Part shown: positions 13,825-34,816 of the stretch, one piece after another
Layout: every line of letters begins with the position of its first letter
Numbering within the stretch: the stretch's first letter is position 1
Assembly: GCA_964187785.1 (NCBI GenBank)
Contig: OZ076409.1
Span: forward strand, 92,008,001-92,072,000
Source: Amphiscolops sp. MND2022
Lineage: Eukaryota
Reading direction: 5' to 3'
Length of the DNA stretch: 64,000 nucleotides
Notes under the pieces: model-generated
What the model was told of the DNA's origin: nothing
The model's database searches: none
The model's input: only the letters and a program-made list of their open reading frames with translations
Translations under genes and position numbers: made by a program

Positions 13825-13829
13825 TATTC

Positions 13830-15446
13830 TGTTACGACTATTGTTCGGTGTCGTTTTAGAACTAGTCGCAGTTTGTGCTTTGACTGGGGTGGACGTTCTC
13901 GCTACGGAGACGTTTTCTTGGTCAGAATCAGAATCTTGCAAGTTCAGATTAACTGAGCGTTTCTTGTTCGCAGGTGCTATTAATTTGAGCATTTCCTTTT
14001 GATTTTCAGCTAATATTTTTGTTAGATCAGTCATTATCTCTTTTCTCAGAGTTGTTTTTATTTCCTCCAGGTTTTCAAGCTCAAGTCTAGGGTTTTTACT
14101 AGAACTAGGTATCAGGTTTTCGGTGGAGTTATTTTCAGCTAGGGAAGCTTCAAAATCTCCCGACGCTAACTCAGCTATAGCTTTTCTCTTCTGGCTCCTT
14201 GTCGTCGTTTTCAAAGTCGAGATATCAGAGTCTTTGGCAAGAATTAAATTCTTCAAAGAAATTTTGAGTTTTCGTAATTACAACGAGCAACAAAGTTTTG
14301 AAACAAATTCAAGTTCAACTAAAAATACATGTCCTCTCTACATATTTATACCTTCTTAGCATCATTTGTTCCTCACCTAAAAACTCCTAGGAATCTTAAA
14401 AATCGGGTTTGTTCAACAAAATTCGCCGATGATTCAAATTATTTCAGTCTGGCGTCATAAATTCAGGTATCGAAATTCCTAGTTGCGTCAACATTCCGTG
14501 AGACTTTGTTGAAATCATTTTTGTTCAGATAATCCATTTCCTGTTTGATCTTCAAAACCGCGGTAAAATGGAAGTCTAACTGACATTTTCATCGGCGTAG
14601 GCACGCCGGCGTGAACTATTAGTCAATATCCAACTCAAGGAGTTGGAATTTTGAGGAAAAAGATGATGTTCAAAAATGGTGACGGAAACGATACGTCGCT
14701 GAAAATTCGCCGTTGAGAATATTTGAAACGAGAAACAAATGATGCTGATGGGCATTAAGGCAGACTGACTTCAGTATACAACAAACATGAAATTCAACAT
14801 AATAATTGACTTGGGTTACGGGGATACTCCGTATCATGTCCCAAATACTATCTAACTGCAACAGCACAAGAATAAAAATAAAACAATGTAACAAAGGCAT
14901 TTCAAAACTGGTACAAATCCGAAATTGCTTTCGGGATCATTCATTCATCATCATATTTAGGGTTAGGTTATAAAATTAGCATCAAACAGACATCAGTATA
15001 ATTTACGTATACACTTCGTGACTTGGAATTAGGTCCTGAGTAATACAGCTTTTATCATACAGAAAACATGACGTAAGTTTACGAGGATTAGTGCAAAATC
15101 CATCACCATCAACTGATCATAAACTGCAAAGAAAGCATCGGCATGAATTACAGGTACACTCCGTAATATGGCGAACTTCAGAAGATTAAACCGGATATGG
15201 AAAATCTATTAAGCGTGAAATCTTTTAACCGGAAGTTTTAGCTAAAAATCATTTCTCAAAATATTTCGTGACGCATACGTTAGATTCTTATTCTGAAAAA
15301 TTGTCTACGAAATAATCTTAGCTGCACTGTAGGTAGAATTATATTAGTTTAGTTAGTATTTTAATGGTACTTGCAGTATCCCCTTCCTCTGCCTCTTCCT
15401 AGGGCGAAACACCATTCACACCCACGACCGGGAGCGGGTCGTGACA
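13830..15446 (-). repeat. Gypsy-2 terminal 3' LTR with an internal deletion of about 736 bp (equivalent to 33799-34534)
   Basis: Junction ccgtaaTAT/Ggcgaac at 15167-15169 with TAT microhomology. Confidence 0.92.
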
Positions 15447-16007
15447 GGGCCCCTCTCCTCGCTAAATACGTCGGTAGGCCGTGGCAATGGGGAATTTCTT
15501 TTGTGACTAGCACTGAGGGTCGGCTTAGGTAACTTCTCATCGGGTGGGGGCCGCGACCTCTCCCCGCAGTCATACGGGCAATTCTCTTTTCTTCTTCTTC
15601 AAGTTCCCGCACCATGTTTTCAAAATGTTCCCGTTCCTCTTGGGTGATTTCGGGTGGCTTGATTGGTTCATTCAGATCATTCAAGCTTGAGTCTGCTAAT
15701 TGCGTGAGGGGGGTATTTACTTTTCCGCAAGGCTTGAAAGGAGGCTGGCTTGGCTTCTTTGCTACGTTATTTCCCCGTCCTAGGGACCTGAAAAATTGGC
15801 GGTCTTCTAAGTCAAGATCGTAGAGGGCCTCTAAGTCGTCTGCGGAGGGTCCGTTTCCTCCCTGGGCCACGATGGTCCCTCGTTTCCTTTCATTACCCAG
15901 TGTGGGGAAATTTTCTTTTTCTTTACTTTGAGGGGGGAGAGTAGGAGTCTCGGGTTCTTCATAGTAGTCATCAGAGTCGACGTCTTCGGGTAGGGCAAAA
16001 GATACTC
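15361..16007 (-). pseudogene. 5'-truncated third copy of ORF287
   Basis: Sequence breaks within the RVSF codons and joins LTR DNA. Confidence 0.85.
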
Positions 16008-17992
16008 CTTGTCGTCATTTTCAAAGTCGAGATATCAGAGTCTTTGGCAAGAATTAAATTCTTCAAAGAAATTTTGAGTTTTCGTAATTACAACGAGCAA
16101 CAAAGTTTTGAAACAAATTCAAGTTCAACTAAAAATACATGTCCTCTCTACATATTTATACCTTCTTAGCATCATTTGTTCCTCACCTAAAAACTCCTAG
16201 GAATCTTAAAAATCGGGTTTGTTCAACAAAATTCGCCGATGATTCAAATTATTTCAGTCTGGCGTCATAAATTCAGGTATCGAAATTCCTAGTTGCGTCA
16301 ACATTCCGTGAGACTTTGTTGAAATCATTTTTGTTCAGATAATCCATTTCCTGTTTGATCTTCAAAACCGCGGTAAAATGGAAGTCTAACTGACATTTTC
16401 ATCGGCGTAGGCACGCCGGCGTGAACTATTAGTCAATATCCAACTCAAGGAGTTGGAATTTTGAGGAAAAAGATGATGTTCAAAAATGGTGACGGAAACG
16501 ATACGTCGCTGAAAATTCGCCGTTGAGAATATTTGAAACGAGAAACAAATGATGCTGATGGGCATTAAGGCAGACTGACTTCAGTATACAACAAACATGA
16601 AATTCAACATAATAATTGACTTGGGTTACGGGAATACTCCGTATCATGTCCCAAATACTATCTAACTGCAACAGCACAAGAATAAAAATAAAACAATGTA
16701 ACAAAGGCATTTCAAAACTGGTACAAATCCGAAATTGCTTTCGGGATCATTCATTCATCATCATATTTAGGGTTAGGTTATAAAATTAGCATCAAACAGA
16801 CATCAGTATAATTTACGTATACACTTCGTGACTTGGAATTAGGTCCTGAGTAATACAGCTTTTATCATACAGAAAACATGACGTAAGTTTACGAGGATTA
16901 GTGCAAAATCCATCACCATCAACTCATCATAAACTGCAAAGAAAGCATCGGCATGAATTACAGGTACACTCCGTAATATAGTATTTGAAAGGTATAGCAA
17001 TGGCTTAATAAATTAGTATAGAATTCAAGACATTACAACTTTGTTCTTCTCATAATCCTTCCTCACAGTGCAGCTGTTTTCCTCTAAAACCTAATCAAGA
17101 AATTCCTTAGCTAATAATGAACCAGGAAAAATTCTCTTAAACTTTCATTCGTTCCATTCTTTTCTAACTATATGTTCTCAAACCACTCCGCAAATGCTTC
17201 GTATGTATTAAGATTGCTTATAGTAGAGCGGTGGACTACAATTTTACAATTCGCCACGTAACTGCTACGTACGTATAAAGATTGCTTATAGCTAGTAGGT
17301 CAGAGTGGACAGAAAGCGAGCGGAACGCGTAGGCGAATTCATTCTTTCTCTCTTATTCTGATTGGCGTTGCTAGGGGCAACCGAATTCAATACCGCTCGC
17401 GCTAGCTAAGAATAATCCTGCCGAGGAGGTGACGTTATTAGTCCGCGAAAGTAGAATATCTAATTTTAACTCAGTAGAGTGACGCCGTCATTACGTTGTA
17501 AATCCTCTCTTAAGTCACTTGATTGCGCCTTAAGTGGGTATTGACAACTACTTTATCACAGAAAACACCAAAACAACTCTGTCTTTTATGTATTTTTCCT
17601 TTTAGATCGTATGGATTCCGTTGGGATTGCGGGATTTTAAATGTGTTTTATTTTAGTGTGGAACTGAAGAAAAATCCCTGTTGTTAAATGTCTATTTTGG
17701 TATTTAGATCAGTATGGCGAACTTCAGAAGATTAAACCGGATATGGAAAATCTATTAAGCGTGAAATCTTTTAACCGGAAGTTTTAGCTAAAAATCATTT
17801 CTCAAAATATTCCGTGACGCATACGTTAGATTCTTATTCTGAAAAATTGTCTACGAAATAATCTTAGCTGCACTGTAGGTAGAATTATATTAGTTTAGTT
17901 AGTATTTTAATGGTACTTGCAGTATCCCCTTCCTCTGCCTCTTCCTAGGGCGAAACACCATTCACACCCACGACCGGGAGTGGGTCGTGACA
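16005..17992 (-). repeat. Extra internal LTR copy lacking about 365 bp at the U5 end
   Basis: Matches about 32824-34811; junction with CTC microhomology at 16005-16007. Confidence 0.92.
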
Positions 17993-18770
17993 GGGCCCCT
18001 CTCCTCGCTAAATACGTCGGTAGGCCGTGGCAATGGGGAATTTCTTTTGTGACTAGCACTGAGGGTCGGCTTAGGTAACTTCTCATCGGGTGGGGGCCGC
18101 GACCTCTCCCCGCAGTCATACGGGCAATTCTCTTTTCTTCTTCTTCAAGTTCCCGCACCATGTTTTCAAAATGTTCCCGTTCCTCTTGGGTGATTTCGGG
18201 TGGCTTGATTGGTTCATTCAGATCATTCAAGCTTGAGTCTGCTAATTGCGTGAGGGGGGTATTTACTTTTCTGCAAGGCTTGAAAGGAGGCTGGCTTGGC
18301 TTCTTTGCTACGTTATTTCCCCGTCCTAGGGACCTGAAAAATTGGCGGTCTTCTAAGTCAAGATCGTAGAGGGCCTCTAAGTCGTCTGCGGAGGGTCCGT
18401 TTCCTCCCTGGGCCACGATGGTCCCTCGTTTCCTTTCATTACCCAGTGTGGGGAAATTTTCTTTTTCTTTACTTTGAGGGGGGAGAGTAGGAGTCTCGGG
18501 TTCTTCATAGTAGTCATCAGAGTCGACGTCTTCGGGTAGGGCAAAAGATACTCTTGTTAGCCTTTTCTTTTTCCTGGGTGTCGGTGTTTCTTTCGCTGGC
18601 GATTCTGGGCTTGACTCTAATTCGGCGTCGCTTCCACGGTAAACTTCCGTGGAAGAGTCACTGAGGTCAAGTCTTCCGACCATATTTACCGGTACGGTCT
18701 TCAATGGCGTGCTATGTCTCATATTTTCTTCATCTGATGAGATGTCGATGACTAGTGAATATCCTGCCAT
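17907..18770 (-). CDS. Second full copy of ORF287
   Basis: Offset 2650 bp from the copy at 20557; two amino-acid differences (G/R, T/A). Confidence 0.8.
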   Translation of the reverse strand: MAGYSLVIDISSDEENMRHSTPLKTVPVNMVGRLDLSDSSTEVYRGSDAELESSPESPAKETPTPRKKKRLTRVSFALPEDVDSDDYYEEPETPTLPPQSKEKENFPTLGNERKRGTIVAQGGNGPSADDLEALYDLDLEDRQFFRSLGRGNNVAKKPSQPPFKPCRKVNTPLTQLADSSLNDLNEPIKPPEITQEEREHFENMVRELEEEEKRIARMTAGRGRGPHPMRSYLSRPSVLVTKEIPHCHGLPTYLARRGALSRPTPGRGCEWCFALGRGRGRGYCKYH

Positions 18771-19414
18771 TTTTTAAAGCGGTAGAAATTGCGAAGTTTC
18801 TTTAATTTATGTAGGCGAGATTGTTTATTTAGATTAGTGAAGCGCTGGTCAAGCCTTGTGAAAATTGAACGACAAATGAACGTTTCACTTTGCTTTCTTT
18901 CGTAATTTCCATCGAATTCTTATTGGTCGATTTCTGTTTTCGTTCCGGTTCGTCCCGAGTTAGGTGAAACGAACTCTTTCCTGCTGCGCTGTGATTGGTT
19001 TAAATCCTTAAGGAAAACTTCTAATTTTAGCTCTCGTCCTCTTTTAGATTAATGGCGTAATGACATCTTTGACTTTCATTGTCGAATTACGTCCGTATTT
19101 CATGATCTCTTGATGTTTTTCCATGATTTTCTTTAGTAATTCTCAATGAATGTCTCTCCACCAGTAGGGTTTTTGGAAACGTTTTGTTTCGTCAATGCTT
19201 ATGATAAGCTTGAGATGTGAAGCTATGAATGGTTCCTTTTCCTTTTGAGCGAGAATGATATTAAGTTCATTTAATTAGATGCGTTCACGTAACGCGTTTT
19301 CGTCTTTTTCATTTTTCTTTTTAGGATTTCCGTGATAGTTCCGTGTAGTTTCTGTTTTATATTTCTTTTTTCTTTTAGATTTCCTTGACAAGTTCGTCTT
19401 TCTTCGTGTCTGGT

Positions 19415-19765
19415 ATGATGGATCAAGAAGAGGTAGAACGTGGCACTGCTGTAACTTCTGGTCACATAAGTGGAAATGAGACTGGCTACAATTATTCCGA
19501 AGATGACATAGTGTCTACGGAGAATGTAGTTGGATTGTCTACTTCAGGTTGGTAAATACTTTCTGATTTCCATGGGAATCCGGACCTTGGTATTTTTGGT
19601 GATCAGCCTTTTTGGTCCTACCCGTAACTCTGACGCGTCTGAATCCAGATCTTGATTTTCAGTAGCTCAACCTGGTTTTCCTTCCACTTCTCTTGGATTG
19701 GTTGTGGGAAATCCCTCTCCCGTCTTGCCACCAGCTAGTAGTCTCCTGTCAGTTGGAACTCCTCC
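19415..19765 (+). pseudogene. Duplicated exon 1 and part of exon 2 of the cargo gene
   Basis: Part of the 2650-bp tandem unit; truncated at the junction. Confidence 0.75.
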
Positions 19766-20642
19766 AATGAACCAGGAAAAATTCTCTTAAACTTTCATTC
19801 GTTCCATTCTTTTCTAACTATATGTTCTCAAACCACTCCGCAAATGCTTCGTATGTATTAAGATTGCTTATAGTAGAGCGGTGGACTACAATTTTACAAT
19901 TCGCCACGTAACTGCTACGTACGTATAAAGATTGCTTATAGCTAGTAGGTCAGAGTGGACAGAAAGCGAGCGGAACGCGCAGGCGAATTCATTCTTTCTC
20001 TCTTATTCTGATTGGCGTTGCTAGGGGCAACCGAATTCAATACCGCTCGCGCTAGCTAAGAATAATCCTGCCGAGGAGGTGACGTTATTAGTCCGCGAAA
20101 GTAGAATATCTAATTTTAGCTCAGTAGAGTGACGCCGTCATTACGTTGTAAATCCTCTCTTAAGTCACTTGATTGCGCCTTAAGTGGGTATTGACAACTA
20201 CTTTATCACAGAAAACACCAAAACAACTCTGTCTTTTATGTATTTTTCCTTTTAGATCGTATGGATTCCGTTGGGATTGCGGGATTTTAAATGTGTTTTA
20301 TTTTAGTGTGGAACTGAAGAAAAATCCCTGTTGTTAAATGTCTATTTTGGTATTTAGATCAGTATGGCGAACTTCAGAAGATTAAACCGGATATGGAAAA
20401 TCTATTAAGCGTGAAATCTTTTAACCGGAAGTTTTAGCTAAAAATCATTTCTCAAAATATTCCGTGACGCATACGTTAGATTCTTATTCTGAAAAATTGT
20501 CTACGAAATAATCTTAGCTGCACTGTAGGTAGAATTATATTAGTTTAGTTAGTATTTTAATGGTACTTGCAGTATCCCCTTCCTCTGCCTCTTCCTAGGG
20601 CGAAACACCATTCACACCCACGACCGGGAGCGGGTCGTGACA
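19766..20642 (-). repeat. Extra internal partial LTR (U3 side, about 877 bp)
   Basis: Matches about 33936-34811; blunt junction at 19765/19766. Confidence 0.92.
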
Positions 20643-21420
20643 GGGCCCCTCTCCTCGCTAAATACGTCGGTAGGCCGTGGCAATGGGGAATTTCTTTTGT
20701 GACTAGCACTGAGGGTCGGCTTAGGTAACTTCTCATCGGGTGGGGGCCGCGACCTCTCCCCGCAGTCATACGGGCAATTCTCTTTTCTTCTTCTTCAAGT
20801 TCCCGCACCATGTTTTCAAAATGTTCCCGTTCCTCTTGGGTGATTTCGGGTGGCTTGATTGGTTCATTCAGATCATTCAAGCTTGAGTCTGCTAATTGCG
20901 TGAGGGGGGTATTTACTTTTCTGCAAGGCTTGAAAGGAGGCTGGCTTGGCTTCTTTGCTACGTTATTTCCCCGTCCTAGGGACCTGAAAAATTGGCGGTC
21001 TTCTAAGTCAAGATCGTAGAGGGCCTCTAAGTCGTCTGCGGAGGGTCCGTTTCCTCCCTGGGCCACGATGGTCCCTCGTTTCCTTTCATTACCCAGTGTG
21101 GGGAAATTTTCTTTTTCTTTACTTTGAGGGGGGAGAGTAGGAGTCTCGGGTTCTTCATAGTAGTCATCAGAGTCGACGTCTTCGGGTAGGGCAAAAGATA
21201 CTCTTGTTAGCCTTTTCTTTTTCCTGGGTGTCGGTGTTTCTTTCGCTGGCGATTCTGGGCTTGACTCTAATTCGGCGTCGCTTCTACGGTAAACTTCCGT
21301 GGAAGAGTCACTGAGGTCAAGTCTTCCGACCATATTTACCGGTACGGTCTTCAATGGCGTGCTATGTCTCATATTTTCTTCATCTGATGAGATGTCGATG
21401 ACTAGTGAATATCCTGCCAT
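20557..21420 (-). CDS. ORF287: accessory 287-aa protein of unknown function, overlapping PPT and U3
   Basis: Intact ATG..TAA ORF with RKKKR, RVSF, acidic tracts, GRG repeats and C-terminal CEWC-x11-CKYH. Confidence 0.8.
   Translation of the reverse strand: MAGYSLVIDISSDEENMRHSTPLKTVPVNMVGRLDLSDSSTEVYRRSDAELESSPESPAKETPTPRKKKRLTRVSFALPEDVDSDDYYEEPETPTLPPQSKEKENFPTLGNERKRGTIVAQGGNGPSADDLEALYDLDLEDRQFFRSLGRGNNVAKKPSQPPFKPCRKVNTPLTQLADSSLNDLNEPIKPPEITQEEREHFENMVRELEEEEKRIARMTAGRGRGPHPMRSYLSRPSVLVTKEIPHCHGLPTYLARRGALSRPAPGRGCEWCFALGRGRGRGYCKYH
20643..20659 (-). promoter_or_regulatory. Polypurine tract AGCGAGGAGAGGGGCCC before LTR TG (copies at 15447 and 17993)
   Basis: Purine run abutting the TGTCACG LTR start. 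Confidence 0.75.
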
Positions 21421-22065
21421 TTTTTAAAGCGGTAGAAATTGCGAAGTTTCTTTAATTTATGTAGGCGAGATTGTTTATTTAGATTAGTGAAGCGCTGGTC
21501 AAGCTTTGTGAAAATTGAACGACAAATGAACGTTTCACTTTGCTTTCTTTCGTAATTTCCATCGAATTCTTATTGGTCGATTTCTGTTTTCGTTCCGGTT
21601 CGTCCCGAGTTAGGTGAAACGAACTCTTTCCTGCTGCGCTGTGATTGGTTTAAATCCTTAAGGAAAACTTCTAATTTTAGCTCTCGTCCTCTTTTAGATT
21701 AATGGCGTAATGACATCTTTGATTTTCATTGTCGAATTACGTCCGTATTTCATGATCTCTTGATGTTTTTCCATGATTTTCTTTAGTAATTCTCAATGAA
21801 TGTCTATCCACCAGTAGGGTTTTTGGAAACGTTTTGTTTCGTCAATGCTTATGATAAGCTTGAGATGTGAAGCTATGAATGGTTCCTTTTCCTTTTGAGC
21901 GAGAATGATATTAAGTTCTTTTAATTAGATGCGTTCACGTAACGCGTTTTCGTCTTTTTCATTTTTCTTTTTAGGATTTCCGTGATAGTTCCGTGTAGTT
22001 TCTGTTTTATATTTCTCTTTTTCTTTTAGATTTCCTTGACAAGTTCGTCTTTCTTCGTGTCTGGT

Positions 22066-25000
22066 ATGATGGATCAAGAAGAGGTAGAACGTGGCACTGC
22101 TGTAACTTCTGGTCACATAAGTGGAAATGAGACTGGCTACAATTATTCCGAAGATGACATAGTGTCTACGGAGAATGTAGTTGGATTGTCTACTTCAGGT
22201 TGGTAAAATCTTTCTGACTTCCATGGGAATCCGGACCTTGGTATTTTTGGTGATCAGCCTTTTTGGTCCTACCCGTAACTCTGACGCGTCTGAATCCAGA
22301 TCTTGATTTTCAGTAGCTCAACCTGGTTTTCCTTCCACTTCTCTTGGATTGGTTGTGGGAAATCCCTCTCCCGTCTTGCCACCAGCTAGTAGTCTCCTGT
22401 CAGTTGGAACTCCTCCTGGCTTTAGGGCTGCGCTTGCCCAGGCAGCTACGTCGGCCGTGCCCGCTGAATTTCCTCCTACTGAGGATATTGTTACGACTTG
22501 CTCTCGTACTCAACTCGATGCTGTGTCTCAAGGAGGTGAGACTAATTCCCCCTCCGAGGAAGAAACAAGTTAGTAGGTTTTGTCGTTGTCGTATTAATGC
22601 GCTGAAAAAAGGTGGCTAGTGATGGGAGTATTGGGTTTGTGTTTAGGTCCTTCAGTTCGTCAAAGGCGGTCACAGGTCGTGAGCTTTTCGACACCGCCTA
22701 AACGAGCTAAAACGGGCGATACTCCTCCTCCTTCACCATTGACTCCTGCCGAGGGGTGGATTAGTTAGTGCATTTTGTATTATCGCACTGTTGCACGGGT
22801 ATTGTTGTGGGGTTCGAATATCTTGACGAGTTAAAATAGTGTGATTTTTGAAATCATCTACTTTGTAAGGTTGTTTTGTAGTGTCATTGTGTTGTAGGTA
22901 ACGACGAGTTGACGTTGAGTCCGCAGGGTCTGAAGTTGATGGGTCAGCAGATTGTGGAAGAAGTTGACACCCGGACTGCTCGGGCAATTCGGAATAGTGA
23001 GTATTTGTTTGTACTATATGCATAGGTTAGTTGCAGGGTGGGTTTTTAGGGTATGGTTTTCCACGATGTCATTCCGTTTGTCGTGTGTTGCAGGTTTCAG
23101 TGAGTTGAAAACGAGGATGGACGCGCAAACTGACAGTCGCACAAAAGCCAAAAAGTACAGTCGCAAGAACATGTTGAGCAAACGCATGTTATCGTTGCAT
23201 CCCGCATACCGTGATTTCGTGAGTGGATCAAAGACGGGGGCCGGGACTCACTTTCATTGCCTGGTCTGTAAGCGTGATGTGGCCATGGGATCGCAGGGGT
23301 CTCGAGAGTTTGCTCGGCATTTCCAGTCTGACAGTCACTGGGACAAGGATGTCGTATACCGGGTTCATATGGGCATGCCCGTGTTGAACAAACTGATGGA
23401 GCCCTTGCAGCTAAGTGAAGAGCAGCTTGCTGAGTATCGCGCGAAGCCTTTCGTTGAGCTGGGTACTGGGTATCCGTTTCCTGAGGATCTCCTGCCGAAA
23501 CACTCCCGCGTGGAATCAAAAATTCCCTTCATGACCTTTGTGGGCTGTCTCTGTGATTTGTTGCGTTGTGGAGGCGATTTTGCTCTGGTGCGGCAACTCT
23601 GGAGTCACTTTTGTGTGTCACTGGACAAGCAGAAGGCTGATTTCGCTTTGCATTGGAGTCGTTCGGAATCCGTGGTAACTTGTGTGTTTTGTGTGTTTGG
23701 CTTCCTGTTCATCGTTTGGAGTTTGAGAGTTCATAATTTCCCGGTTTTATTTGTTGTTTTCAATAGTGTTCTTCTTTTGGAGTTATTGTGCTCTTCTTCT
23801 CTCTTTTTTTTCTTTCTTTTTTTTCTTTTTTTTTCAGACGTAGGTATAACGAATCATTGTGGCGTTTGTATTTTAGTCGTTTCTCTGTCAGGGGCTTGCT
23901 CCTCGAGTTCTTCGTCTAATGGTCAATGGGATAACGACGTTCAAGGACTATAGTGTCCAGTTCGAGAAGGATCTTTTCGTGTAGCGTTGCTACGTCCTAT
24001 TTTGGGAAAGTAATCAGTTGAAGAAAGTGTGTGTGGGGAGTGAGCCTATTGATCAGCCTGTTCCTGATGCAGAGTTGGTACCCCTGTCCCGCGTGATCCA
24101 TGTTCTGGAGTCAAAGCATTTGCCGTTAATTGTTCGTGGTGCCAGTCCCAGTTTGCTGAGTGTGATGGGCAGTAATCGTTCGGATGGTCGCCGTTTTGTT
24201 GTGTACCACGAGTTCAATGAGGAGACCTTCATACAGTTCCTGCGTCAAGCTCATCAGGACATATTTGGGATGGTAGATATCATTACCATCGTGGAGTATT
24301 TGATTCAAGGGCTCCGGAATGCTGTTTACGAGGAGTGGACGGAGGACAAGGTTGTGCTATGCAGATGTCTTCGAAGAGGCTCCGTTGAGTTCTATGAGTA
24401 TCGCGAGTTGTTGACAGACTTGATTAGTCTTTGGCCTTCAATTCGTCCGTACATCCGTTGTACTGTCAATCCCGAAGCACGTGGCAAATCAGCTACTGTT
24501 AGTATTTTTATTGGTTGCTTTGTCGTTTGCATCACGTGTTGTTTGTAGCTATAGTCGGTTTGATTGTGTTTTTGTTCTTTTCCAGATGTTTGGGACAGAC
24601 TGGCATCTGATTGCTGATAACATGATCGTGCAGCGCTTGGGTCTGTTGCGATTTGTTCTCGACACTTGTAAGTATGATGCTGATTGGTGTTGTTCTCAAT
24701 TGATGCTTGTATCTATCCAGTATAATTGTGTCGTTTGTTATTGTCTGATTGCGTTTGGTGTTCGGTTGTAGTGTTCGGTATTATCTTTGTAAACCCTTGT
24801 TGGTGTTTTAGTTCAAATTAATTTTGAGCAGATGCGTCAGCAACGAAAGGATTACGGCTTCCATGGCTACAGTGAATTGTGTCATTTTGTGTACTGTCTA
24901 CTTCTGCGGACTCGGGAGATTGAGTCATTGCCTGGTATCCATGATTGGGAGGCGTACATGGACGTGAAGAAAATGTCCGAATACCCTGCTGCATCAATGG

Positions 25001-26037
25001 AGACTTTCTTGGACAATTGTGACTTCGGTCGTGAGTTGCTCGCTGGAAAAACGTCTGAGGCTCAGGAGTTCCGTAGATATTGTCGTGATTTCCTGGATCA
25101 GCTGGTCACTGTCATTTTGAACAGTCCTAGTGTGTCATCTGTTGTGGCGAAAGGCCTCTGCAGTTTCAGTCCTGAGATTCTGTTGGAGGGAGATGCCCAT
25201 TCCGTGTTTACCTTATTTGCAGATCTTACTGGAGTATTGGTTTCCTGTGGAATTTTATCGTCCGATGATTCGAACGCTGCTATTGCTCAATTCAGCAGTT
25301 ACGTGGTGGAGAAAAGGAGGTGGCACGAAGGGTCTGACGTGAATGCCAGCGAGATCCCGGATGTGGTACGCTATTTGTTGCAGGACTTTAGGTTTGTCGC
25401 TCGTCCGGAAGTGTGCCGAGTTCTGAAGTTATGCTGTCTTGTAGTTGGGGTCCCCGCAGTGCAGTATCCTCCCGTATCATTTGATCTGAGCGGCTGTGCT
25501 TTGAGTAAAGCTGTCTTCCATGATTGCGTACGCTTAGTGCAATCGTACGTTTTGTGTGCGGGGTATGAGCATCAGGTGTTCTTTACTGATGTGACTTTGG
25601 ATGCGGTTCGAGATGCCATCGTTACTGCAGGGATCTTTTATATTACTCCCAGCTATGATCTCTGGAAGAATTACTGTGATCCTGGTGTGGACTCATTCAT
25701 CGCCAACTATCGCAAATTGTATTCTACATTTTTGCTGGAACGCCGCAAATCTTCAGAGAGGTATTATGTGGAGTGCAATAAAGCGAACAGACGTGCTCGT
25801 GGCAGTGTCGGGGCTTCTGGATCAGAGACCGGCAGTAATGTGAGCGGCGCTTCGAAGAAGAGTAAGAGCGGGAGTACTACGATACATGGTGGCGCGTCCG
25901 GGTCAAAGTCTGTGAAAAAGGTATCTAGTCAGTCTAGTCATTCTGGACAGTCGAAGAAACCAAAAGGTGGCACAAAGGGGCGGAAGAAGGATTCTAGTGA
26001 GGAACGAGATCCTGATGTCGTCCATAGAGTGGCATAA
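22066..26037 (+). CDS. Antisense 8-exon cargo gene (about 1032 aa): low-complexity N-terminus, C2H2 zinc finger, degenerate hAT-transposase-like body, basic tail; one in-frame TAG at 23982-23984
   Basis: Exons 22066-22198, 22314-22568, 22647-22763, 22898-22996, 23094-23674, 23892-24497, 24586-24667, 24812-26037. All seven introns are GT-AG with matching phases; the total is 3099 nt = 1033 codons. Confidence 0.78.
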
Positions 26038-26186: not shown

Positions 26187-29100
26187 CTAGGCGTGAGTTT
26201 GACGTAGTTCTTCCGTCGTAGCTGAGTCTAGCATTCTAAAGTCAGGATCCACGTTAGGTTTCGGATTAGGTCTCAGATTGTATCGACCTACTTTCCTAGG
26301 GTTATATCCAACGACTATAGGCGGTAGTTCAGGCGTTTTGGGAGGGCTTTCTAGAGGCGGTGGTGTTAGTATATAGGGATTGTCACTGACATCCAGATTA
26401 AATGACGTTACGTTGTCGGGGGGTGTTTTGTCTCCTTCGGCTGTTTCATTTGTGGCTGTTTGAGCCACGTCATTTTCCGTTGTAATCTCGCTTGTGGTTG
26501 TTTGAACCACGTCATTTTGCGTTGTAGGTTCGTCATTTTCGATTGTATCTGTGATCTCTGTGATTGTAGTTTCTTCTTTGGCGTTTTCCGTTGCGTCTCC
26601 GAACAGAACTTCTCCGAATTCGGTTTCCCAAGCTTGCGCGTACCAATCATTGTGGGTTGTTTTAACCTCTGGATCTGGAAGGTAATCTTCCCTTCTGACT
26701 GTTACGTCAGGTACTCGCTGATTGGGCGCATATAGCCTTAGGCGAATTCTATGGAGGGTTTGCGTGTAGCGGGTTCCTGTGCGGCGTACGACGTAGTTGT
26801 TGTTGGACAGTACTTTGACGACGATGTACGGACCCGTCCAGATGCAATCTTTGAAAACGAATTTCATTGACTGGTTGTCAGCTTTCGGATTCAAGACGTA
26901 GCAGTAGTCATTCACTTTGAGTGGCGTTGCAGTCGCTTTCTTGTCATAGTATTGTTTGTACTTGAGATATGACTGCATGAGATTGTCTTTAGCTGCTTGT
27001 TGTATCTCAGCTATCTGCTTCTGTAGTTGATCCGTTAGTTCGTCGTTGTTGTCTTTTTTCCATTCCGGCTTTAGTCCCAGCTTGATGTCTAGGATGTTAT
27101 ACGGGATGCGTCCGTGGAACACTGTTGTAGGTTCGCAGCCTAAACTTTCATGGTAGCTTGTATTGTAATTCATGACTGCTATTTGGACATATTTGTGTCA
27201 CATGGATCGTCGTTCCCCCGTCGATATCTTTAGGGAGGTTTTTAAAGAGGCATGAGTCCATTCTAGGATGCCAATGGTTTGAGCGTGTTTCGTCGTTGCG
27301 TGGCTTATTCGTATATCGAGTGTTCGTGCTATTTGGTCGACTACTTCTGACCTGAATTGTGATCCTTTATCTGTTAGTATAACGGTCGGTAGGTAGCAGT
27401 GTCGTGTCATGACGTCTATTATGCATCGTGCGACTGTTTTTGCTGTCATGTCCTGTGTCGGGTATGCGAAAAGATAACGAGAGAAGACGTCCATCATCGT
27501 GACGATGTGCTGATATCCATTGGAGGATGGTAGATTTGGTAGTATATCTACTTCTAGGCAATCTTCTGGTCCCAATGTGAATTCAGTGTTGCTCAGCATT
27601 TTGGGACGTATCTGTCGCGTGTCGATTCTTTTGTTGGCGATGCAGTCTGGGCAACTGGTAACCCAGGCGCGGATTTTTCGTGCTAGTCCCGGGAAATAGT
27701 ATTTGGCTCGGCATTCTTGTATCATCTTTGCTATTCCTGGATGTTTATTTGTCTTGCCATGTAGTGTTGATAGGAGTTCTGGTACAAGGTGTTTAGGAAT
27801 GATGACTTGATTGTGCGTGACTGATCCGTCCTCACCGTAGTATTTGCGCATTAGTACCCCATCTTTCATGATGATTCTTTCTTCGTGGCGTAGTAGGTGG
27901 CGTCCTCGTGGTTCAGTCTTTAGTAGGTGTTTGTCCTATTCTTCGTGCGACACCCGTTGTTTTAACGCTTTCAGTAGGGGGTCCGCATCTTGTTCGTTTC
28001 TGATTCGTGCGTTTTCTTTGATCGCTCCGAATGCATATACTGCGGAGTTGAGGGGTATTTTGATGACTTCGGTGACTTTGGTAGAAAGATCTTTTTCATG
28101 TTCGTCGTTGGCACGTTGTTTACTGAGGGCTTTCCAAGCGAAGATTTCTTGTTCTGATTCTTCCTCTTCATCTGGGAGGAAGAAAAGTTGTTCTTCATTC
28201 GCTACATCCGATGACTGTAGGTTTACTTCTATCGGTGCCGTAAGTATGTCGTACCGTAATTTCAGTTGTACTTTCTCTTTAGGTGTGAGTTCAAGTCTTG
28301 AGAGGAAATCTGCTGCCGTATTTTGTGACCCTGCTACGTGCATGATGCGGAAATTAAATTGGAGTACCTAGTCGCAGGCATTCCAAAGTGCAGGTGGTGT
28401 AGTTTTCGTTTGGAAAAATCGTGTGACCGAACGGTTGTCGGTTAAAACTAGCGTCGGTATTGTCGCTTCCCATAATATATGGCTGTATTCGAGGAAGGCG
28501 TGATATATGGCTAGAAATTCTTTGCAATAGATTGACATTTTCAGTTGTGCTGGTGAAAAAACACGGGATCCAAACGCGACAGGTGCGAAGGTTTTCTTTT
28601 TGGATAGTATTTTCTTTTCATCGTTTTCTTCTATCATGAGGGCATAGCCAGATGCGCGAAAACTTGCGTCTGTCATGAGAACGTATTGCTTTCCTGCTAA
28701 GGGCTGTCGGAGCGCGAGGCCACATTCTTCTGCTAGGCTGTCGTTGATTTCTTTGAAGTTGTCGACGAGTTCTTCGGATATTTTGATCTTGGCGTCGGCC
28801 TTTAGGAGTTCGTACATGCCTATGAGTTTTTCGGACAGGCGGGGTATGTAATTGCGATAATAATTGACGAATCCGATGTATTTTTGAACCTGTTTTTTGG
28901 ACTTGGGGAATCGAACTTTAGAAAGGAAGTTTTTGACTTTCTGGTCTTGCGGTGCTATTCCGTCTGGGGTGATGGTTCTGCCGAGGAATTCAACTTGTGT
29001 AACTCCGAAATGACATTTTTCGATTGTCAATTTCAGGCCTGCTTGTCTGATGCATTTGAAAACTGCTCTAATGTTCTTGATGAGTTGTTCCGTCGTATTT

Positions 29101-31437
29101 GCGGCAATACCAATGTCATCTACATACTGTGCACACTGATCTGCTTTGATGACTGCGTCGAGGTACTCTCGCATGAAGCTTGAGAAGGCTGAGAGGGCTC
29201 TACTTAGTCCTTGGGCTAGGCGCCGGTAGGCGAACGTTCTACTAGCAAAGTTAAAAGCAAGTAATTCTACTGACCTTTGATCTGCCATTTGAAGGCAGTG
29301 GTACGCTTGGGAGCAGTCGAGTTTGCAGAAAAGTTTTTTCCCAGCTAGGTGTTGTGCCGCATCTGAGAGGGTGCTGACGGGGTGGTTGTTGTTGATGTAG
29401 TCATCTGCTATGAGTGCGTTGATTTTGCGCAGATCCACCAGTAGTCTCAGTTTGCCGTTGGGTTTCCGTTGTGCAAATATAGGACTGGCGTACTTGGAGA
29501 AGGGGAGTGTCGTGATGATGCCGTATTTGTGCATGAGGGCCAGCTCTACTGTCAGGTCTTCTTTGAGATTGATTGGGACTGGTAGACTCTGGGTGTATAC
29601 TGGTTTATCATCTCTTGGTGTGAGGCTGACTTTGAATTGCGTGTTCATTCCGATGTCGAGACGGTGGCGGGCAAATATGTCGTTAAATTCGACTAATGTG
29701 CTTTCAAGGTTTTCACGGTCTTTGCCCGTAATTAGTGAGTCAGTCCATTTGAATAACGAAAGGAATTTGTGTCGAGATTCAGCGTTTTCAGTTGGATCTA
29801 GTTTTTCTAGTTCGGCAAGTTCTCGTAGTTCTTTCAAAATTCGTTTTTGTATGGCGGTGTGTTCTTGTTCATTGCCAGGGTTGTCTGGGGTTGGGAACCA
29901 GAATTTTTCTTCAATATCTTCGGGTTTGTCGACTTGCATAAGTGCGTTGATGTATGTGACTACATCGTCGTGCTCTGTTAGAAGGTTGAGTGCAGCGATG
30001 TCTACAGGCCGTATCAGTTTCGTTTCTTCTGGTTTGAGGATTTGTAGTTCCGCGATCTTGGTGTCTGGAGCTATCGTATAGGGGAAGTCTGTTGTGTTGG
30101 CGACCTTGATTGCTACTTTCTTGCTTCTGGCTGTTGTGATTGCTGGGGCTACTATTAGTTTTGAGTTTTCGTCGAATTGTGGTAGGGGCTGGATTGTCCC
30201 TGTGATGGTGTGTTCTGTTGTCACGGGTATCACTGCGTATATTATTCGCGTTGCTTGTGCTGGTATAGTATGTTTCGCTTCCGTTTTAATGGTGATAGGT
30301 TTCAGATTGCATTTTTGCATTTCGTCTGTGAGTGCCATCGTAATTTGAATCTTCGGGAAGTCAATTGTTCCGGGCAGTGTCGAGAATTGCGGCATGTTTC
30401 CGTAGGAATGCTAGTCCGATGATGGGGAAGGACATCTGGTTCATGACAATGAACGTTTCCTCAAAGTTATAGTTGCCAATTTTGAAACGTAATGTATACG
30501 TTGCCAGAGGTTGCTCGAGTTCAGCATTAGCATATTGTACCTTGAAAGGGGGTGGGGGTGCCTTGTGTATGATGCATTGGTTTGCATCTTGTCGGAGTTT
30601 TTCGGCGTCTCTTTCACTAATGGCATTGATGTATGCACCTGAGTCGACGAGGGCGTCTATTTTGACGGAATTGAAGTCTACTGGTAAGAAAAGCATTCGT
30701 TTTTTCTTTTTCAGTGTAATTGCTGACATTAGCGGAATGTAGTCGTCATCTTTGTCATGTTGTATGAATTCCTTGATGACGTCTAGGTCGTCGGGTAGTG
30801 ATGTTGGGTATTCTATTTCTGCATCGTTGCTTCTCGTCATCGCTGTGGCTGGTGCTGTCTGTGTGGGCGGTGGAGATGATGAATCAATGGTTGGGTCTTC
30901 AGGCTTCTGTTGCCACAACGTTTTATCTTCAATGCAAATGATGTCCTCTGCGTTTATGGGCGTGGACGTGACGGTGACGGGCACTGTTGGGGAAGGTCCT
31001 GGGTTCTTCAATATCGGTGAGGGCGGTGGTGGAAAATGATGTGTTTCTCTGGGCTGGGGCTGTGGGTTTGGTATCTGGATTTTGAAAGCAAGTTTGTTGT
31101 GGTCGTATATGTGGGGGTTGTCCCAAGGATCACATCTGTAGTCCACGTCATATATGTATGTTCGTTCAGTTTTGGATTCTGGCAGAGGTCGTTTCAGTGT
31201 GGCATAATTGTCAGGCGACTCCGTTATCCATTGGGGTAGTGGTGTTGGGTCTTCTGGGTGTCGTGCATTGTGTCTAAGTATCATGCCTACGTTCCAACGA
31301 CGTTGCCAGTCCTGTGTCGGTTCTTCGTTGCATTCTGTGAAGAAATCTTCCTCGTATCTATTTGGGGGGTCTTCGATGTTGTACGCCCTCGCGTCTACTT
31401 TTTCCCCGAACCGTAGACGCGGCGATTTTAGTTTTTT
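26187..31437 (-). pseudogene. pol: Gypsy-2 pol (PR LVDSGA; RT YVDD; RNase H; integrase H..H/C..C, D,D; long C-tail), disabled by one frameshift and three nonsense codons
   Basis: ORFs 30361-31284, 28368-30395, 27936-28343, 27198-27869, 26187-27173; the last four are in one frame separated by TAG, TAG, TGA. Confidence 0.95.
31384..31437 (-). promoter_or_regulatory. -1 ribosomal frameshift signal: A_AAA_AAC plus downstream hairpin
   Basis: Slippery heptamer 31431-31437 directly before the gag TAA; stem CGCGTCTAC/GTAGACGCG; the -1 frame is open into pol. Confidence 0.8.
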
Positions 31438-32885
31438 GTTTGGGTGTTGGCGGTGGGGACAGGGGCGTCACTGATTTTGTCCGTGGGGATGGTGAATTCC
31501 CTCTTCTTTCGTCTGGGGTCATTTGCCGCATTTGCTCCGTTCCAACAATTCTCGGTTTTGTGCATTTTTCCGCATGTATTGCACTTGGGTTTGGGGGCTT
31601 CGCTTTGGTTTAAGTCTTTGGTAGGAGGTTTGGCGTTGTTGTAGCGTTCTCTCTGGAGCCTGCGACACTGTGCTTTATAGTGGCCGTATTTTCCGCAGTG
31701 GAAACAATGACCTCGTTGTTGTTGGTCTTTTTTGTCTTCCGTCACTACAGCGTCCACTGTGTTGAGTGGGACTAGGGTGGTTTCATCGGGCGCTCCTAGT
31801 CCGTTTAATCGCATTTCCCGTTCGAGGTGGAGAATTATATCATTGTAGGGTTTATCCTCCAAGTATGCCCTGTTGAGTATCTTTTTTACGTGGTCGGGCA
31901 TTTTGGCGTAGATTGCGTTGTCGATGAATTTCTGTGCTTCAGAGCCAAACGCTTCTTTCGCGGTTTTTTGTAGGATATCAAGGAATTCGTGTAGTTTTTG
32001 TTTGGTGGGGTCAAAGTGGAGTGCGTCCCACTCGCATCTTGCTTTGGCGGAGGATTGAAAATTGCCAAAACGTCGTTTGAAAGCCGTTATGACTTCTTCC
32101 AGATTGTCTTTTTTAGTGTCGTCTAGGTTGCAGTACGCTTGGAGTGCGTTCCCGCGTAGTAGTGAGTGGAAGTAGTTGATTTTTTGGATTTCCGTCAAGT
32201 GGGGATACATTTTAATATTGTTTCGGAACAAGTCCTCAAAAAGTTGAAATTTTTTGGACTTACCATCAAAAACTGGAAGCGAAGCTGTGAGGGCTTTCGG
32301 CATCGGAAGTGGGTGGGCAGATGGGAACGTCTGCGGTTGTGGTGCGAACAGTATCTTTGACGTGGATGGTCGGTCTTTTGGTTGTTCGCTGAGTATACGT
32401 TGTGCTTTTGGTCTTTTGGTGGGTTGGTTAGTGGAATCATTGAGGACTCCTGTCACCATGTTACGACTATTGTTCGGTGTCGTTTTAGAACTAGTCGCAG
32501 TTTGTGCTTTGACTGGGGTGGACGTTCTCGCTACGGAGACGTTTTCTTGGTCAGAATCAGAATCTTGCAAGTTCAGATTAACTGAGCGTTTCTTGTTCGC
32601 AGGTGCTATTAATTTGAGCATTTCCTTTTGATTTTCAGCTAATATTTTTGTTAGATCAGTCATTATCTCTTTTCTCAGAGTTGTTTTTATTTCCTCCAGG
32701 TTTTCAAGCTCAAGTCTAGGGTTTTTACTAGAACTAGGTATCAGGTTTTCGGTGGAGTTATTTTCAGCTAGGGAAGCTTCAAAATCTCCCGACGCTAACT
32801 CAGCTATAGCTTTTCTCTTCTGGCTCCTTGTCGTCATTTTCAAAGTCGAGATATCAGAGTCTTTGGCAAGAATTAAATTCTTCAA
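31428..32885 (-). CDS. gag: Gypsy-2 gag (intact; likely start MTTRSQ at about 32837), two CCHC knuckles
   Basis: CFHCGKYGHYKAQC and CNTCGKMHKTENC; reads through the LTR end and PBS. Confidence 0.92.
   Translation of the reverse strand: MKNLILAKDSDISTLKMTTRSQKRKAIAELASGDFEASLAENNSTENLIPSSSKNPRLELENLEEIKTTLRKEIMTDLTKILAENQKEMLKLIAPANKKRSVNLNLQDSDSDQENVSVARTSTPVKAQTATSSKTTPNNSRNMVTGVLNDSTNQPTKRPKAQRILSEQPKDRPSTSKILFAPQPQTFPSAHPLPMPKALTASLPVFDGKSKKFQLFEDLFRNNIKMYPHLTEIQKINYFHSLLRGNALQAYCNLDDTKKDNLEEVITAFKRRFGNFQSSAKARCEWDALHFDPTKQKLHEFLDILQKTAKEAFGSEAQKFIDNAIYAKMPDHVKKILNRAYLEDKPYNDIILHLEREMRLNGLGAPDETTLVPLNTVDAVVTEDKKDQQQRGHCFHCGKYGHYKAQCRRLQRERYNNAKPPTKDLNQSEAPKPKCNTCGKMHKTENCWNGANAANDPRRKKREFTIPTDKISDAPVPTANTQTKN
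32446..32458 (-). promoter_or_regulatory. PBS TGGTGACAGGAGT (tRNA-Leu-like)
   Basis: Abuts the LTR-terminal CA. Confidence 0.8.
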
Positions 32886-34811
32886 AGAAATTTTGAGTTT
32901 TCGTAATTACAACGAGCAACAAAGTTTTGAAACAAATTCAAGTTCAACTAAAAATACATGTCCTCTCTACATATTTATACCTTCTTAGCATCATTTGTTC
33001 CTCACCTAAAAATTCCTAGGAATCTTAAAAATCGGGTTTGTTCAACAAAATTCGCCGATGATTCAAATTATTTCAGTCTGGCGTCATAAATTCAGGTATC
33101 GAAATTCCTAGTTGCGTCAACATTCCGTGAGACTTTGTTGAAATCATTTTTGTTCAGATAATCCATTTCCTGTTTGATCTTCAAAACCGCGGTAAAATGG
33201 AAGTCTAACTGACATTTTCATCGGCGTAGGCACGCCGGCGTGAACTATTAGTCAATATCCAACTCAAGGAGTTGGAATTTTGAGGAAAAAGATGATGTTC
33301 AAAAATGGTGACGGAAACGATACGTCGCTGAAAATTCGCCGTTGAGAATATTTGAAACGAGAAACAAATGATGCTGATGGGCATTAAGGCAGACTGACTT
33401 CAGTATACAACAAACATGAAATTCAACATAATAATTGACTTGGGTTACGGGAATACTCCGTATCATGTCCCAAATACTATCTAACTGCAACAGCACAAGA
33501 ATAAAAATAAAACAATGTAACAAAGGCATTTCAAAACTGGTACAAATCCGAAATTGCTTTCGGGATCATTCATTCATCATCATATTTAGGGTTAGGTTAT
33601 AAAATTAGCATCAAACAGACATCAGTATAATTTACGTATACACTTCGTGACTTGGAATTAGGTCCTGAGTAATACAGTTTTTATCATACAGAAAACATGA
33701 CGTAAGTTTACGAGGATTAGTGCAAAATCCATCACCATCAACTGATCATAAACTGCAAAGAAAGCATCGGCATGAATTACAGGTACACTCCGTAATATAG
33801 TATTTGAAAGGTATAGCAATGGCGTAATAAATTAGTATAGAATTCAAGACATTACAACTTTGTTCTTCTCATAATCCTTCCTCACAGTGCAGCTGTTTTC
33901 CTCTAAAACCTAATCAAGAAATTCCTTAGCTAATAATGAACCAGGAAAAATTCTCTTAAACTTTCATTCGTTCCATTCTTTTCTAACTATATGTTCTCAA
34001 ACCACTTCGCAAATGCTTCGTATGTATTAAGATTGCTTATAGTAGAGCGGTGGACTACAATTTTACAATTCGCCACGTAACTGCTACGTACGTATAAAGA
34101 TTGCTTATAGCTAGTAGGTCAGAGTGGACAGAAAGCGAGCGGAACGCGTAGGCGAATTCATTCTTTCTCTCTTATTCTGATTGGCGTTGCTAGGGGCAAC
34201 CGAATTCAATACCGCTCGCGCTAGCTAAGAATAATCCTGCCGAGGAGGTGACGTTATTAGTCCGCGAAAGTAGAATATCTAATTTTAGCTCAGTAGAGTG
34301 ACGCCGTCATTACGTTGTAAATCCTCTCTTAAGTCACTTGATTGCGCCTTAAGTGGGTATTGACAACTACTTTATCACAGAAAACACCAAAACAACTCTG
34401 TCTTTTATGTATTTTTCCTTTTAGATCGTATGGATTCCGTTGGGATTGCGGGATTTTAAATGTGTTTTATTTTAGTGTGGAACTGAAGAAAAATCCCTGT
34501 TGTTAAATGTCTATTTTGGTATTTAGATCAGTATGGCGAACTTCAGAAGATTAAACCGGATATGGAAAATCTATTAAGCGTGAAATCTTTTAACCGGAAG
34601 TTTTAGCTAAAAATCATTTCTAAAAATATTCCGTGACGCATACGTTAGATTCTTATTCTGAAAAATTGTCTACGAAATAATCTTAGCTGCACTGTAGGTA
34701 GAATTATATTAGTTTAGTTAGTATTTTAATGGTACTTGCAGTATCCCCTTCCTCTGCCTCTTCCTAGGGCGAAACACCATTCACACCCACGACCGGGAGC
34801 GGGTCGTGACA
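32459..34811 (-). repeat. Gypsy-2 5' LTR (2353 bp); contains the gag start and the last 86 nt of ORF287
   Basis: Minus strand begins TGTCACG and ends ..GTAACA directly before the PBS; near-identical to 13830-15446. Confidence 0.95.
34180..34200. promoter_or_regulatory. CCAAT box next to an RFX X-box-like palindrome GTTGCTAGGGGCAAC in U3 (copies about 17361-17381 and 20011-20031)
   Basis: Fits GTNRCY-N3-RGYAAC; TATAAG motifs lie downstream on the minus strand. Confidence 0.5.
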
Positions 34812-34816
34812 TATTC

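Follow-up and report, generated by a model that had tools for sequence, protein, structure and literature searches.

A minus-strand Ty3/Gypsy long terminal repeat (LTR) retrotransposon of Amphiscolops sp. MND2022 carries, on the strand opposite to its gag and pol genes, an eight-exon protein-coding gene whose product is predicted to have the fold of a hAT DNA transposase. The element lies in a stretch of 64,000 nucleotides (assembly GCA_964187785.1, contig OZ076409.1, positions 92,008,001 to 92,072,000 of the forward strand), hereafter the window, in which the insertion spans 13830-34811 and the antisense gene occupies 22066-26037 on the plus strand. The gene is a genuine, selected accessory gene of this retrotransposon lineage, and we hold its identity and its selection with great confidence. 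Taken as a whole, the best explanation is a selected accessory gene derived from a hAT transposase, catalytically dead and acting as a DNA-binding regulator, and we give this combined reading a probability of roughly 0.55.

The eight exons join into a single frame of 3114 nt, corresponding to 1037 codons plus a stop codon, across seven introns of 115, 78, 134, 97, 202, 88 and 144 nt, all of which are GT..AG and which fall in phases 1, 1, 1, 1, 0, 0 and 1 (Table 1). A sequence-only reading of the window had already proposed an eight-exon gene antisense within a Gypsy-type element, with seven GT-AG introns in compatible phase, and the reconstruction confirms this layout; its count of 1033 codons gives way to 1037, a difference that comes from small splice-site choices only. 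The C-x2-C-x16-H-x5-H zinc-finger pattern that it recognised holds to the exact position, and the Ser/Pro-rich N-terminus and Lys/Ser-rich tail that it described are recovered as a Pro/Ser/Ala/Thr-rich composition of exons 2 and 3 and a tail of 24% Ser, 15% Lys and 15% Gly. The premature TAG it noticed in exon 6 is likewise the sole internal in-frame stop of the gene and is private to this copy, being a sense codon both in a copy of the same subfamily and in three diverged subfamilies. The gene is placed between pol and the 3' part of the element, where it lies tail-to-tail with pol, its end being 150 nt from the pol stop (26187, minus strand), and its start codon is 1.4 kb from the LTR boundary at 20642.

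Three other subfamilies from the same genome were compared with the window family, with protein identities of 53-78% over exons 5, 6 and 8. All seven donor and acceptor sites are found at matching codon positions and in matching phases in the four subfamilies, one copy having a single altered donor. The length of exon 6 is 621 nt throughout the four and that of exon 5 is 579-582 nt, whereas the introns vary in length (202, 108, 78 and 131 nt in the case of intron 5) and, with the exception of intron 1, their sequences cannot be aligned between subfamilies. In exons 5, 6 and 8, the proportion of differences at synonymous sites (pS) is 0.70-0.84 and thus saturated, against a proportion at non-synonymous sites (pN) of 0.13-0.30. 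Because synonymous sites are saturated while pN stays in this range, the protein is under selection, and because the seven splice positions and phases recur in subfamilies with saturated synonymous sites, the gene structure is not a product of chance.

The same picture emerges from the many copies of the gene in the genome. The last exon has more than 100 scored genome matches among 7877 first-look candidates, and nearly all matches that are 94-100% identical have an open frame. Two of the three other full-length copies of the same subfamily keep all eight exons open together with every splice site, and the third has one changed donor; at shorter loci, exons 6-8 are readable in 10 of 11, one of these with a stop. 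Three expectations attached to the sequence-only reading were therefore borne out, namely that other copies should have intact frames (most are open), that intron positions should be conserved (all seven are kept in the four subfamilies) and that dN/dS should lie below 1 (pN is far below pS), and its concern that the region might be absent from other family copies is contradicted by the presence of the gene at the same place in every subfamily examined. The accessory genes of the element, of which this is one, evolve at 2-4 times the non-synonymous rate of pol, for which pN is 0.03-0.12 in reverse transcriptase (RT) and integrase at similar pS. A separate observation concerns the C-terminal region of integrase (26187-27173, minus strand), which lies towards the end of the antisense gene: its pS is 0.48-0.55, compared with 0.61-0.73 for RT in the same subfamilies, and this lower value could be due to the 3' end of the antisense transcript overlapping and constraining the region.

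The mobile unit that carries the gene is well defined. The normal form of the element, seen in other copies in the genome, is about 16.5 kb long with a single 3' unit, and consists, in order, of a 2353-bp LTR, gag, protease, RT/RNase H, integrase, about 5.5 kb of further internal sequence and the 3' LTR. Pfam matches within pol (Asp_protease, RVT_1, RT_RNaseH, Integrase_H2C2 and rve) follow the order protease, RT, RNase H, integrase, and the domain order is identical in loci L028, L030 and L035. The LTRs start with TG and finish with CA, as read from the termini; the window copy is flanked by a 5-bp target-site duplication, as are two other copies, each by its own (CATGG and TCCAC), and no 8-bp duplication of the hAT type is found in the three. 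Because of its TG..CA LTRs, primer-binding site, purine tract and 5-bp duplications, the element is an integrase-type Ty3/Gypsy retrotransposon, and it inserts like integrase-driven LTR elements and not like a hAT element. The LTR pieces of the window copy are 99.6-99.7% identical, and this copy is therefore young.

The antisense gene extends well beyond the window family. Distant homologues of its last exon, at 34-35% identity, are also tail-to-tail with a pol gene. In the same genome, a second large family (12122 first-look candidates) has the gene at the same position, with the part from the finger to the C-terminus encoded in one uninterrupted open reading frame (ORF) of about 860 residues. 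This intron-poor type, represented by G000 and L030 (ENA ERZ25074608) and by L029 and L035 (ENA ERZ1742291), reads straight through at the sites of introns 5 to 7 of the window family, so that intron number differs between the sister families; for intron 5, P0211, a relative of the intron-poor type, shows unbroken sequence at precisely that point. The sister family without these three core introns retains several N-terminal exons. The same layout is present in the second public sample, ERZ1742291, which probably comes from another organism because its proteins reach at most 49-50% identity to this genome. No named protein set contributed any of the homologues. Long ORFs from Logan/ENA (P0054, P0102 and others) were considered as spliced transcripts and rejected, since they read through intron sequence and are genomic. 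In one intron-poor subfamily (G000), about 20 copies have the same single TAG inside the match, which could represent a stop codon that they have in common or else a small intron.

The identity of the protein is suggested by its predicted fold. The relative P0211, which comes from another sample, is a naturally continuous, intron-poor protein. It shares 21-33% identity with the window protein and is collinear with window exons 5, 6 and 8 (E = 7e-26, 6e-20 and 3e-16; the exon 6 match was computed with another copy of the window subfamily). Folded with 19 relatives in the alignment, it gave a model with a predicted local distance difference test score (pLDDT) of 77 and a predicted template modelling score (pTM) of 0.70, in which a beta-beta-beta-alpha-beta-alpha core (strands 240-246, 250-259, 262-272 and 300-302, with helices between) is followed by a large region of about 330 helical residues; such a layout corresponds to an RNase H-like core with an all-helical domain inserted into it. 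In a Foldseek search against the PDB, the 12 top-ranking rows all belong to the Hermes hAT transposase (E = 3e-5 to 1.3e-3), and the next match has E = 0.03. A second structure aligner also places Hermes first, with Z scores of 13.0-13.4 over 386-402 aligned residues (model 195-695 against Hermes 136-609). The nearest rows other than Hermes reach a best Z of 6.0 and are mostly DDE transposases and recombinases (ISCth4, RAG1, P element), plus two RIG-I-like helicases, and HIV integrase, foamy-virus integrase and Transib come next at Z of about 4. Clusters of the AlphaFold DB return ZBED8, ZMYM1, KIAA1586-like and hAT-dimerisation proteins (E = 3e-11 to 6e-6), all 30 of the 30 best Swiss-Prot models are hAT-derived, with ZNF862 at rank 2 and GTF2IRD2 at ranks 14, 22 and 25, and the language-model neighbours in the ESM Atlas carry Dimer_Tnp_hAT (PF05699), DUF4371 and FAM200-ZBED5.

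Because the Foldseek, second-aligner, AlphaFold DB, Swiss-Prot and ESM Atlas comparisons agree, the protein family is assigned, on the strength of this model, a hAT-transposase fold, which the window protein is predicted to inherit by homology. The product as modelled comprises a disordered Pro/Ser-rich N-terminus with the motif PPKRAK, a BED-like CCHH finger, a complete hAT-transposase-like body and a basic Ser/Lys tail; in the predicted body, a helical insertion domain divides the RNase H-like core, and a C-terminal part follows. PPKRAK, in exon 3, looks like a nuclear localisation signal (NLS). The earlier suggestion that the protein resembles hAT transposases of the ZNF862/GTF2IRD2 type thus finds support in the fold of the collinear homologue, at the level of structure and with no link at the level of sequence. 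The structure search against Hermes and the hAT families that the suggestion called for had a divided outcome, with Hermes at the top (Z 13) for the homologue and no match for exon 8 alone; indeed, the hAT signal appeared only when the natural full-length intron-poor homologue was folded. At the C-terminus, the hAT dimerisation domain PF05699 is unmatched by Pfam, and the structural alignment reaches Hermes residue 609. In a two-copy prediction of the core (residues 200-695), the chain itself came out unfolded, with a pLDDT of 32.

The transposase is probably no longer catalytic, as judged from the model and an alignment of 20 homologues. Core strand 1, with the consensus F-S-[LIV]-[SAT]-[LF]-[RQK], has no invariant Asp or Glu; directly after strand 4, in R-G-C-S-P-T-L-F-N, there is again no invariant acidic residue, Asp being found in 3 of the 20; and the two helices that are candidates for the catalytic Glu (641-653 and 675-689) have none either, the second having an invariant Q-S. 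Copies of the window type have Y-S-V-Q-F-E-K at strand 1 and V-R-G-A-S-P after strand 4. These places were mapped by secondary-structure register, without superposed coordinates. The earlier claim that the catalytic D/E is lost is likely to hold: no invariant acidic residue occupies the predicted places, but the positions come from register and conserved acidic residues lie nearby.

How might such a gene have arisen, and what might it do? We propose that an ancestor of the lineage would have taken the gene from a hAT DNA transposon that landed antisense in the region between pol and the LTR. An intron that lies antisense in a genomic RNA is not recognised there, which is the principle behind antisense-intron retrotransposition reporters. 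The seven introns are antisense to the genomic RNA; on this principle they are not removed from it, survive each round of copying and so are inherited. The protein would then enter the nucleus and bind DNA of the element sequence-specifically, and the bound protein would promote expression of its own family or protect the family from silencing. A nuclear DNA-binding factor fits the finger, the NLS-like motifs, the predicted fold and the fast evolution, and fast evolution relative to pol would also fit co-evolution with a DNA target or with host defence. This specific role, as a nuclear sequence-specific DNA-binding regulator or anti-silencing factor, is nevertheless put forward tentatively, at somewhat less than an even chance.

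Several observations weigh against this reading and should be set beside it. As to the gene, the four sequencing runs that hold the stretch are DNA-like, with depth in the thousands, and none of the seven predicted junctions is seen in them; moreover, the canonical AATAAA is not found between the stop codon and the end of pol in the stretch as read by eye. As to the fold, Pfam gave nothing relevant for any exon, for the full-length homologues or for the 20 members of alignment A2, and sequence searches of the PDB, whether from one protein or from a profile, found no transposase. The fold was predicted on a homologue and not on the window protein, whose exon 8 folded alone has a pLDDT of 64 and no PDB match with E below 0.3. 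TM-scores are modest (0.3-0.55), and although the finger pattern is conserved, Pfam zf-BED is unmatched and the model has low confidence in this region. As to the loss of catalysis, the mapping by register is accompanied by conserved acidic residues nearby (D237, E271, D/E665 and E/D698, in model numbering), and the end of strand 1 carries E and D in copies of the window type. The function, finally, is purely inferred.

Among other explanations, the one that survives best, and that we still consider unlikely, is that the protein is a cofactor of integration or of the pre-integration complex, in which the finger, the basic tail and the NLS-like motifs would carry the complex of cDNA and integrase to the nucleus or tether it to chromosomal sites, and not a regulator of transcription. 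The integrase of the element keeps its own zinc-binding, core and C-terminal domains, which argues against such a cofactor, and the three insertion sites share no target motif beyond the 5-bp duplication, a number of sites too small to judge. Nonetheless, the NLS-like PPKRAK and a Lys-rich tail are present, the fold is of a DNA-binding type, and strong selection at the level of element propagation fits an integration cofactor; nuclear import has also been raised as a possible role of antisense accessory proteins in a review of antisense ORFs (aORFs) in plants (PMC7264820).

We give distinctly less credence to the view that the antisense transcript itself is what matters, so that convergent transcription against pol would yield double-stranded RNA or precursors of Piwi-interacting RNAs that tune the activity of the element, the ORF being incidental. 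Regulatory antisense RNAs are known for micropia, TART and IAP (PMC7264820), and with 150 nt from the gene end to the pol stop and no canonical poly(A) signal between them, read-through into the antisense of pol is plausible. However, a role at the RNA level alone leaves unexplained why 1037 codons are open in most copies, why pN is far below pS in every conserved exon, why exon lengths are conserved to the nucleotide and why a coherent predicted fold is retained. RNA-level and protein roles could coexist. Comparably improbable is a surviving enzymatic role, in which the protein would cut or join DNA on behalf of the element as a hAT-like nuclease or recombinase whose active site has shifted. 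The whole catalytic architecture, including the insertion domain, is retained in the predicted model, with conserved acidic residues near the core (D237, E271 and D/E665) and the Asp after strand 4 in a minority of homologues; against this, none of the predicted catalytic places (the middle of strand 1, the stretch directly following strand 4 and the two candidate helices) has an invariant acidic residue, the insertions with 5-bp duplications and TG..CA ends are typical of an integrase and not of hAT elements with their 8-bp duplications, and many of the best-matching hAT-derived host proteins are known to be non-catalytic. It is scarcely credible that the gene is a useless passenger, in other words a hAT transposon or host gene in decay that was once nested in a single master copy and has hitch-hiked since: nested insertions are common, and the window copy has both an in-frame stop and a 3' rearrangement, yet the gene is at the same place even in subfamilies that are 21-35% identical, its conservation at saturated synonymous sites contradicts a passenger, and no terminal inverted repeats were noticed, the gene flanks not having been searched for them. 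A selected, hAT-derived and DNA-binding accessory protein is thus the reading that we prefer.

Intron 1 of the antisense gene is 79-86% identical between subfamilies with saturated synonymous sites (a comparison of four subfamilies only), and its read depth is about 10 times that of the rest. It contains five palindromes (CCATGG, TCCGGA, TGATCA, GACGCGTC and AGATCT), and it could be an enhancer, an internal promoter or an array of binding sites. No Rfam family, no significant fold and no motif common with the LTR was found in it, and the block is absent from the intron-poor family.

On the other side of a spacer that is presumed to hold the promoter, the antisense gene is met, in head-to-head arrangement, by a sense accessory ORF of 287 aa. 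This ORF includes the polypurine tract and runs 86 nt into the LTR sequence starting at 20642 before it stops, and it has no Pfam match. The ORF is kept in all subfamilies, in which it is 30-49% identical and fast-evolving (pN 0.33-0.36), with pS similar to that of pol. Duplicate copies in the window are located at 17907-18770 and 15361-15870, both on the minus strand. The window copy of the element is rearranged at its 3' end, and the rearrangement, which lies within one pair of target-site duplications, includes a 2651-bp tandem duplication (17116-19765 = 19766-22416) that repeats the sense ORF together with antisense exon 1 and part of exon 2, as well as extra partial LTR and internal pieces, including a truncated LTR. 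The terminal 3' LTR (13830-15446) is without 733 bp.

Table 1. Coordinates, within the window, of the antisense gene and of the retrotransposon that carries it.
Feature	Position	Strand	Basis
Exon 1: start codon, conserved motif SGNET.Y.YS.DD	22066-22198	plus	reconstruction, subfamily comparison
Intron 1: unusually conserved non-coding block	22199-22313	plus	subfamily comparison
Exon 2: Pro/Ser/Ala-rich, phase 1-1	22314-22568	plus	reconstruction, subfamily comparison, composition
Exon 3: contains PPKRAK (NLS-like)	22647-22763	plus	reconstruction, composition
Exon 4	22898-22996	plus	reconstruction, subfamily comparison
Exon 5: BED-like finger and pre-core region (predicted)	23094-23674	plus	collinear with P0211 residues 70-248, E 7e-26
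C-x2-C-x16-H-x5-H zinc-finger pattern	23258-23338	plus	sequence; same spacing in P0211
Exon 6: RNase H-like core strands 1-5 (predicted)	23877-24497	plus	collinear with P0211 residues 252-444; model secondary structure
Premature TAG, private to this copy	23982-23984	plus	comparison with other copies
Exon 7	24586-24667	plus	reconstruction
Exon 8: helical insertion and C-terminal part of hAT-like fold (predicted), then Ser/Lys/Gly-rich tail	24812-26037	plus	collinear with P0211 residues 498-760, E 3e-16
Spacer between the two head-to-head accessory genes, presumed promoter	21421-22065		position only
Sense accessory ORF, 287 aa	20557-21420	minus	ORF
Polypurine tract beside LTR start	20643-20656	minus	read from sequence
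Pol (protease, RT, RNase H, integrase), broken into five ORFs in this copy	26187-31284	minus	ORFs and Pfam
Gag ORF: DUF1759 and CCHC knuckles	31428-32885	minus	ORF and Pfam
Primer-binding site TGGTGACAGGAG, directly after 5' LTR	32447-32458	minus	read from sequence
5' LTR, 2353 bp, TG..CA ends	32459-34811	minus	self-comparison, other copies, termini
Rearranged 3' end of this copy	13830-22416	minus	self-comparison, other copies
Target-site duplication TATTC, 5 bp	right copy 34812-34816, left copy 13825-13829		read from sequence

Some further observations concern the element and its surroundings in the window. The open frame of gag extends about 140 codons upstream into the 5' LTR (32459-32885), with an ATG that spans the junction of the LTR and the primer-binding site, and this LTR-borne frame is also open in the 3' LTR (13783-14256). 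A related Gypsy element, with an RT about 62% identical, lies on the plus strand at 58459-64000, and the end of the window cuts it before its accessory region. In addition, direct repeats with a period of about 2.7 kb are found at 44097-51978, in three units that are 92-99% identical over parts.

The implications go beyond this one element. Antisense extra genes of plant LTR retrotransposons have been known for 25 years without a clue to their origin or function. Here, an origin can be read from the predicted fold, which points to a DNA transposase taken over by a retrotransposon; this would be a domestication of one mobile element by another mobile element and not by the host, and it yields a testable hypothesis, namely that the protein binds DNA and acts on the family that encodes it. 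The genome, which contains young copies by the thousand along with several diverged subfamilies, offers a natural system for comparing protein and target. It is instructive, too, on how introns endure, and vary in number, in a gene copied only through an antisense RNA. For annotation the case is a warning, as such genes will be called as host "ZBED/GTF2IRD2-like" genes or missed altogether. We judge the chances to be about even for the most general statement of the case: that an animal LTR-retrotransposon lineage domesticated a hAT-derived, intron-bearing antisense gene, which selection has preserved in two or more organisms while the lineage diverged as deeply as 21-35% identity, with the protein maybe required as a sequence-specific DNA-binding or anti-silencing factor, and with introns gained or lost even though the gene travels only via reverse transcription of the opposite strand.

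The full-text literature, of which coverage was partial, yielded no account of an animal LTR retrotransposon whose antisense gene is hAT-derived or bears introns. The LTR retrotransposons of bdelloid rotifers retain extra ORFs beside gag and pol, among them env, DEDDy, GDSL and others (PMC5408684). Unlike the gene described here, these third ORFs are not reported to be intron-bearing or transposase-derived, the words "intron", "hAT" and "transposase" being absent from the text, and "antisense" in that study refers to small RNAs only (PMC5408684).

By its predicted fold, the closest likeness of the protein is to the hAT transposases (Hermes, Ac) and their derivatives (ZNF862, GTF2IRD2, ZBED5, THAP0/P52rIPK, FAM200, KIAA1586 and ZMYM1), with which it would share a CCHH finger and a core split by a helical domain. 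Many domesticated hAT derivatives have no recognisable catalytic triad, and none is recognisable here at the places mapped by register. In contrast to hAT proteins, however, there is no detectable sequence similarity or Pfam match, and unlike hAT transposons and host derivatives, the gene is multicopy, lies inside an LTR retrotransposon and is selected there; it has no 8-bp duplication and is not a single-copy host gene.

By its position, the gene resembles the aORFs of plant Gypsy elements, which lie between pol and the 3' LTR, as in Grande gene23, RIRE2, Retand ORF4 and PvRetro13 (PMC7264820). In plants, the aORF is preserved from copy to copy, is believed to be driven by a promoter of its own, has a nuclear product in some cases and is suspected of a regulatory role; the proteins have no clear relatives, the 2020 review having found no similarity to other transposable elements and no support for an origin in one (PMC7264820). 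The gene described here is, like them, antisense, placed between pol and the 3' LTR and present in most copies, but it differs in its recognisable DNA-transposase fold (as predicted), its animal host and its seven positionally conserved introns. As for homology to the plant proteins, no Pfam family was matched at E up to 1-10, including the Transposase_28 (PF04195) of Retand.

Two further systems are informative for what such a protein might do. HBZ of human T-cell leukaemia virus type 1 (HTLV-1) is a small bZIP protein, encoded by a spliced antisense gene of a retroelement and transcribed from its 3' LTR, that acts as a nuclear regulator. The 3' LTR of HTLV holds an antisense promoter (PMC7264820). 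The gene described here is likewise a spliced protein-coding gene on the antisense strand of a retroelement; unlike HBZ, it gives no bZIP match, has its start 1.4 kb in from the LTR boundary, and specifies a protein of about 1037 residues that appears to be of transposase origin. A similar role could be proposed by analogy. VANC proteins, to which the sequence-only reading likened the product, are anti-silencing proteins of the VANDAL (Mutator-like) DNA transposons of plants. Whereas VANC sits in a plant DNA transposon, the gene described here sits in an animal LTR retrotransposon, and the likeness is one of analogy, homology not being expected; by this analogy, it too would be a fast-evolving accessory protein, encoded by a transposable element, that could act on the DNA of its own family.

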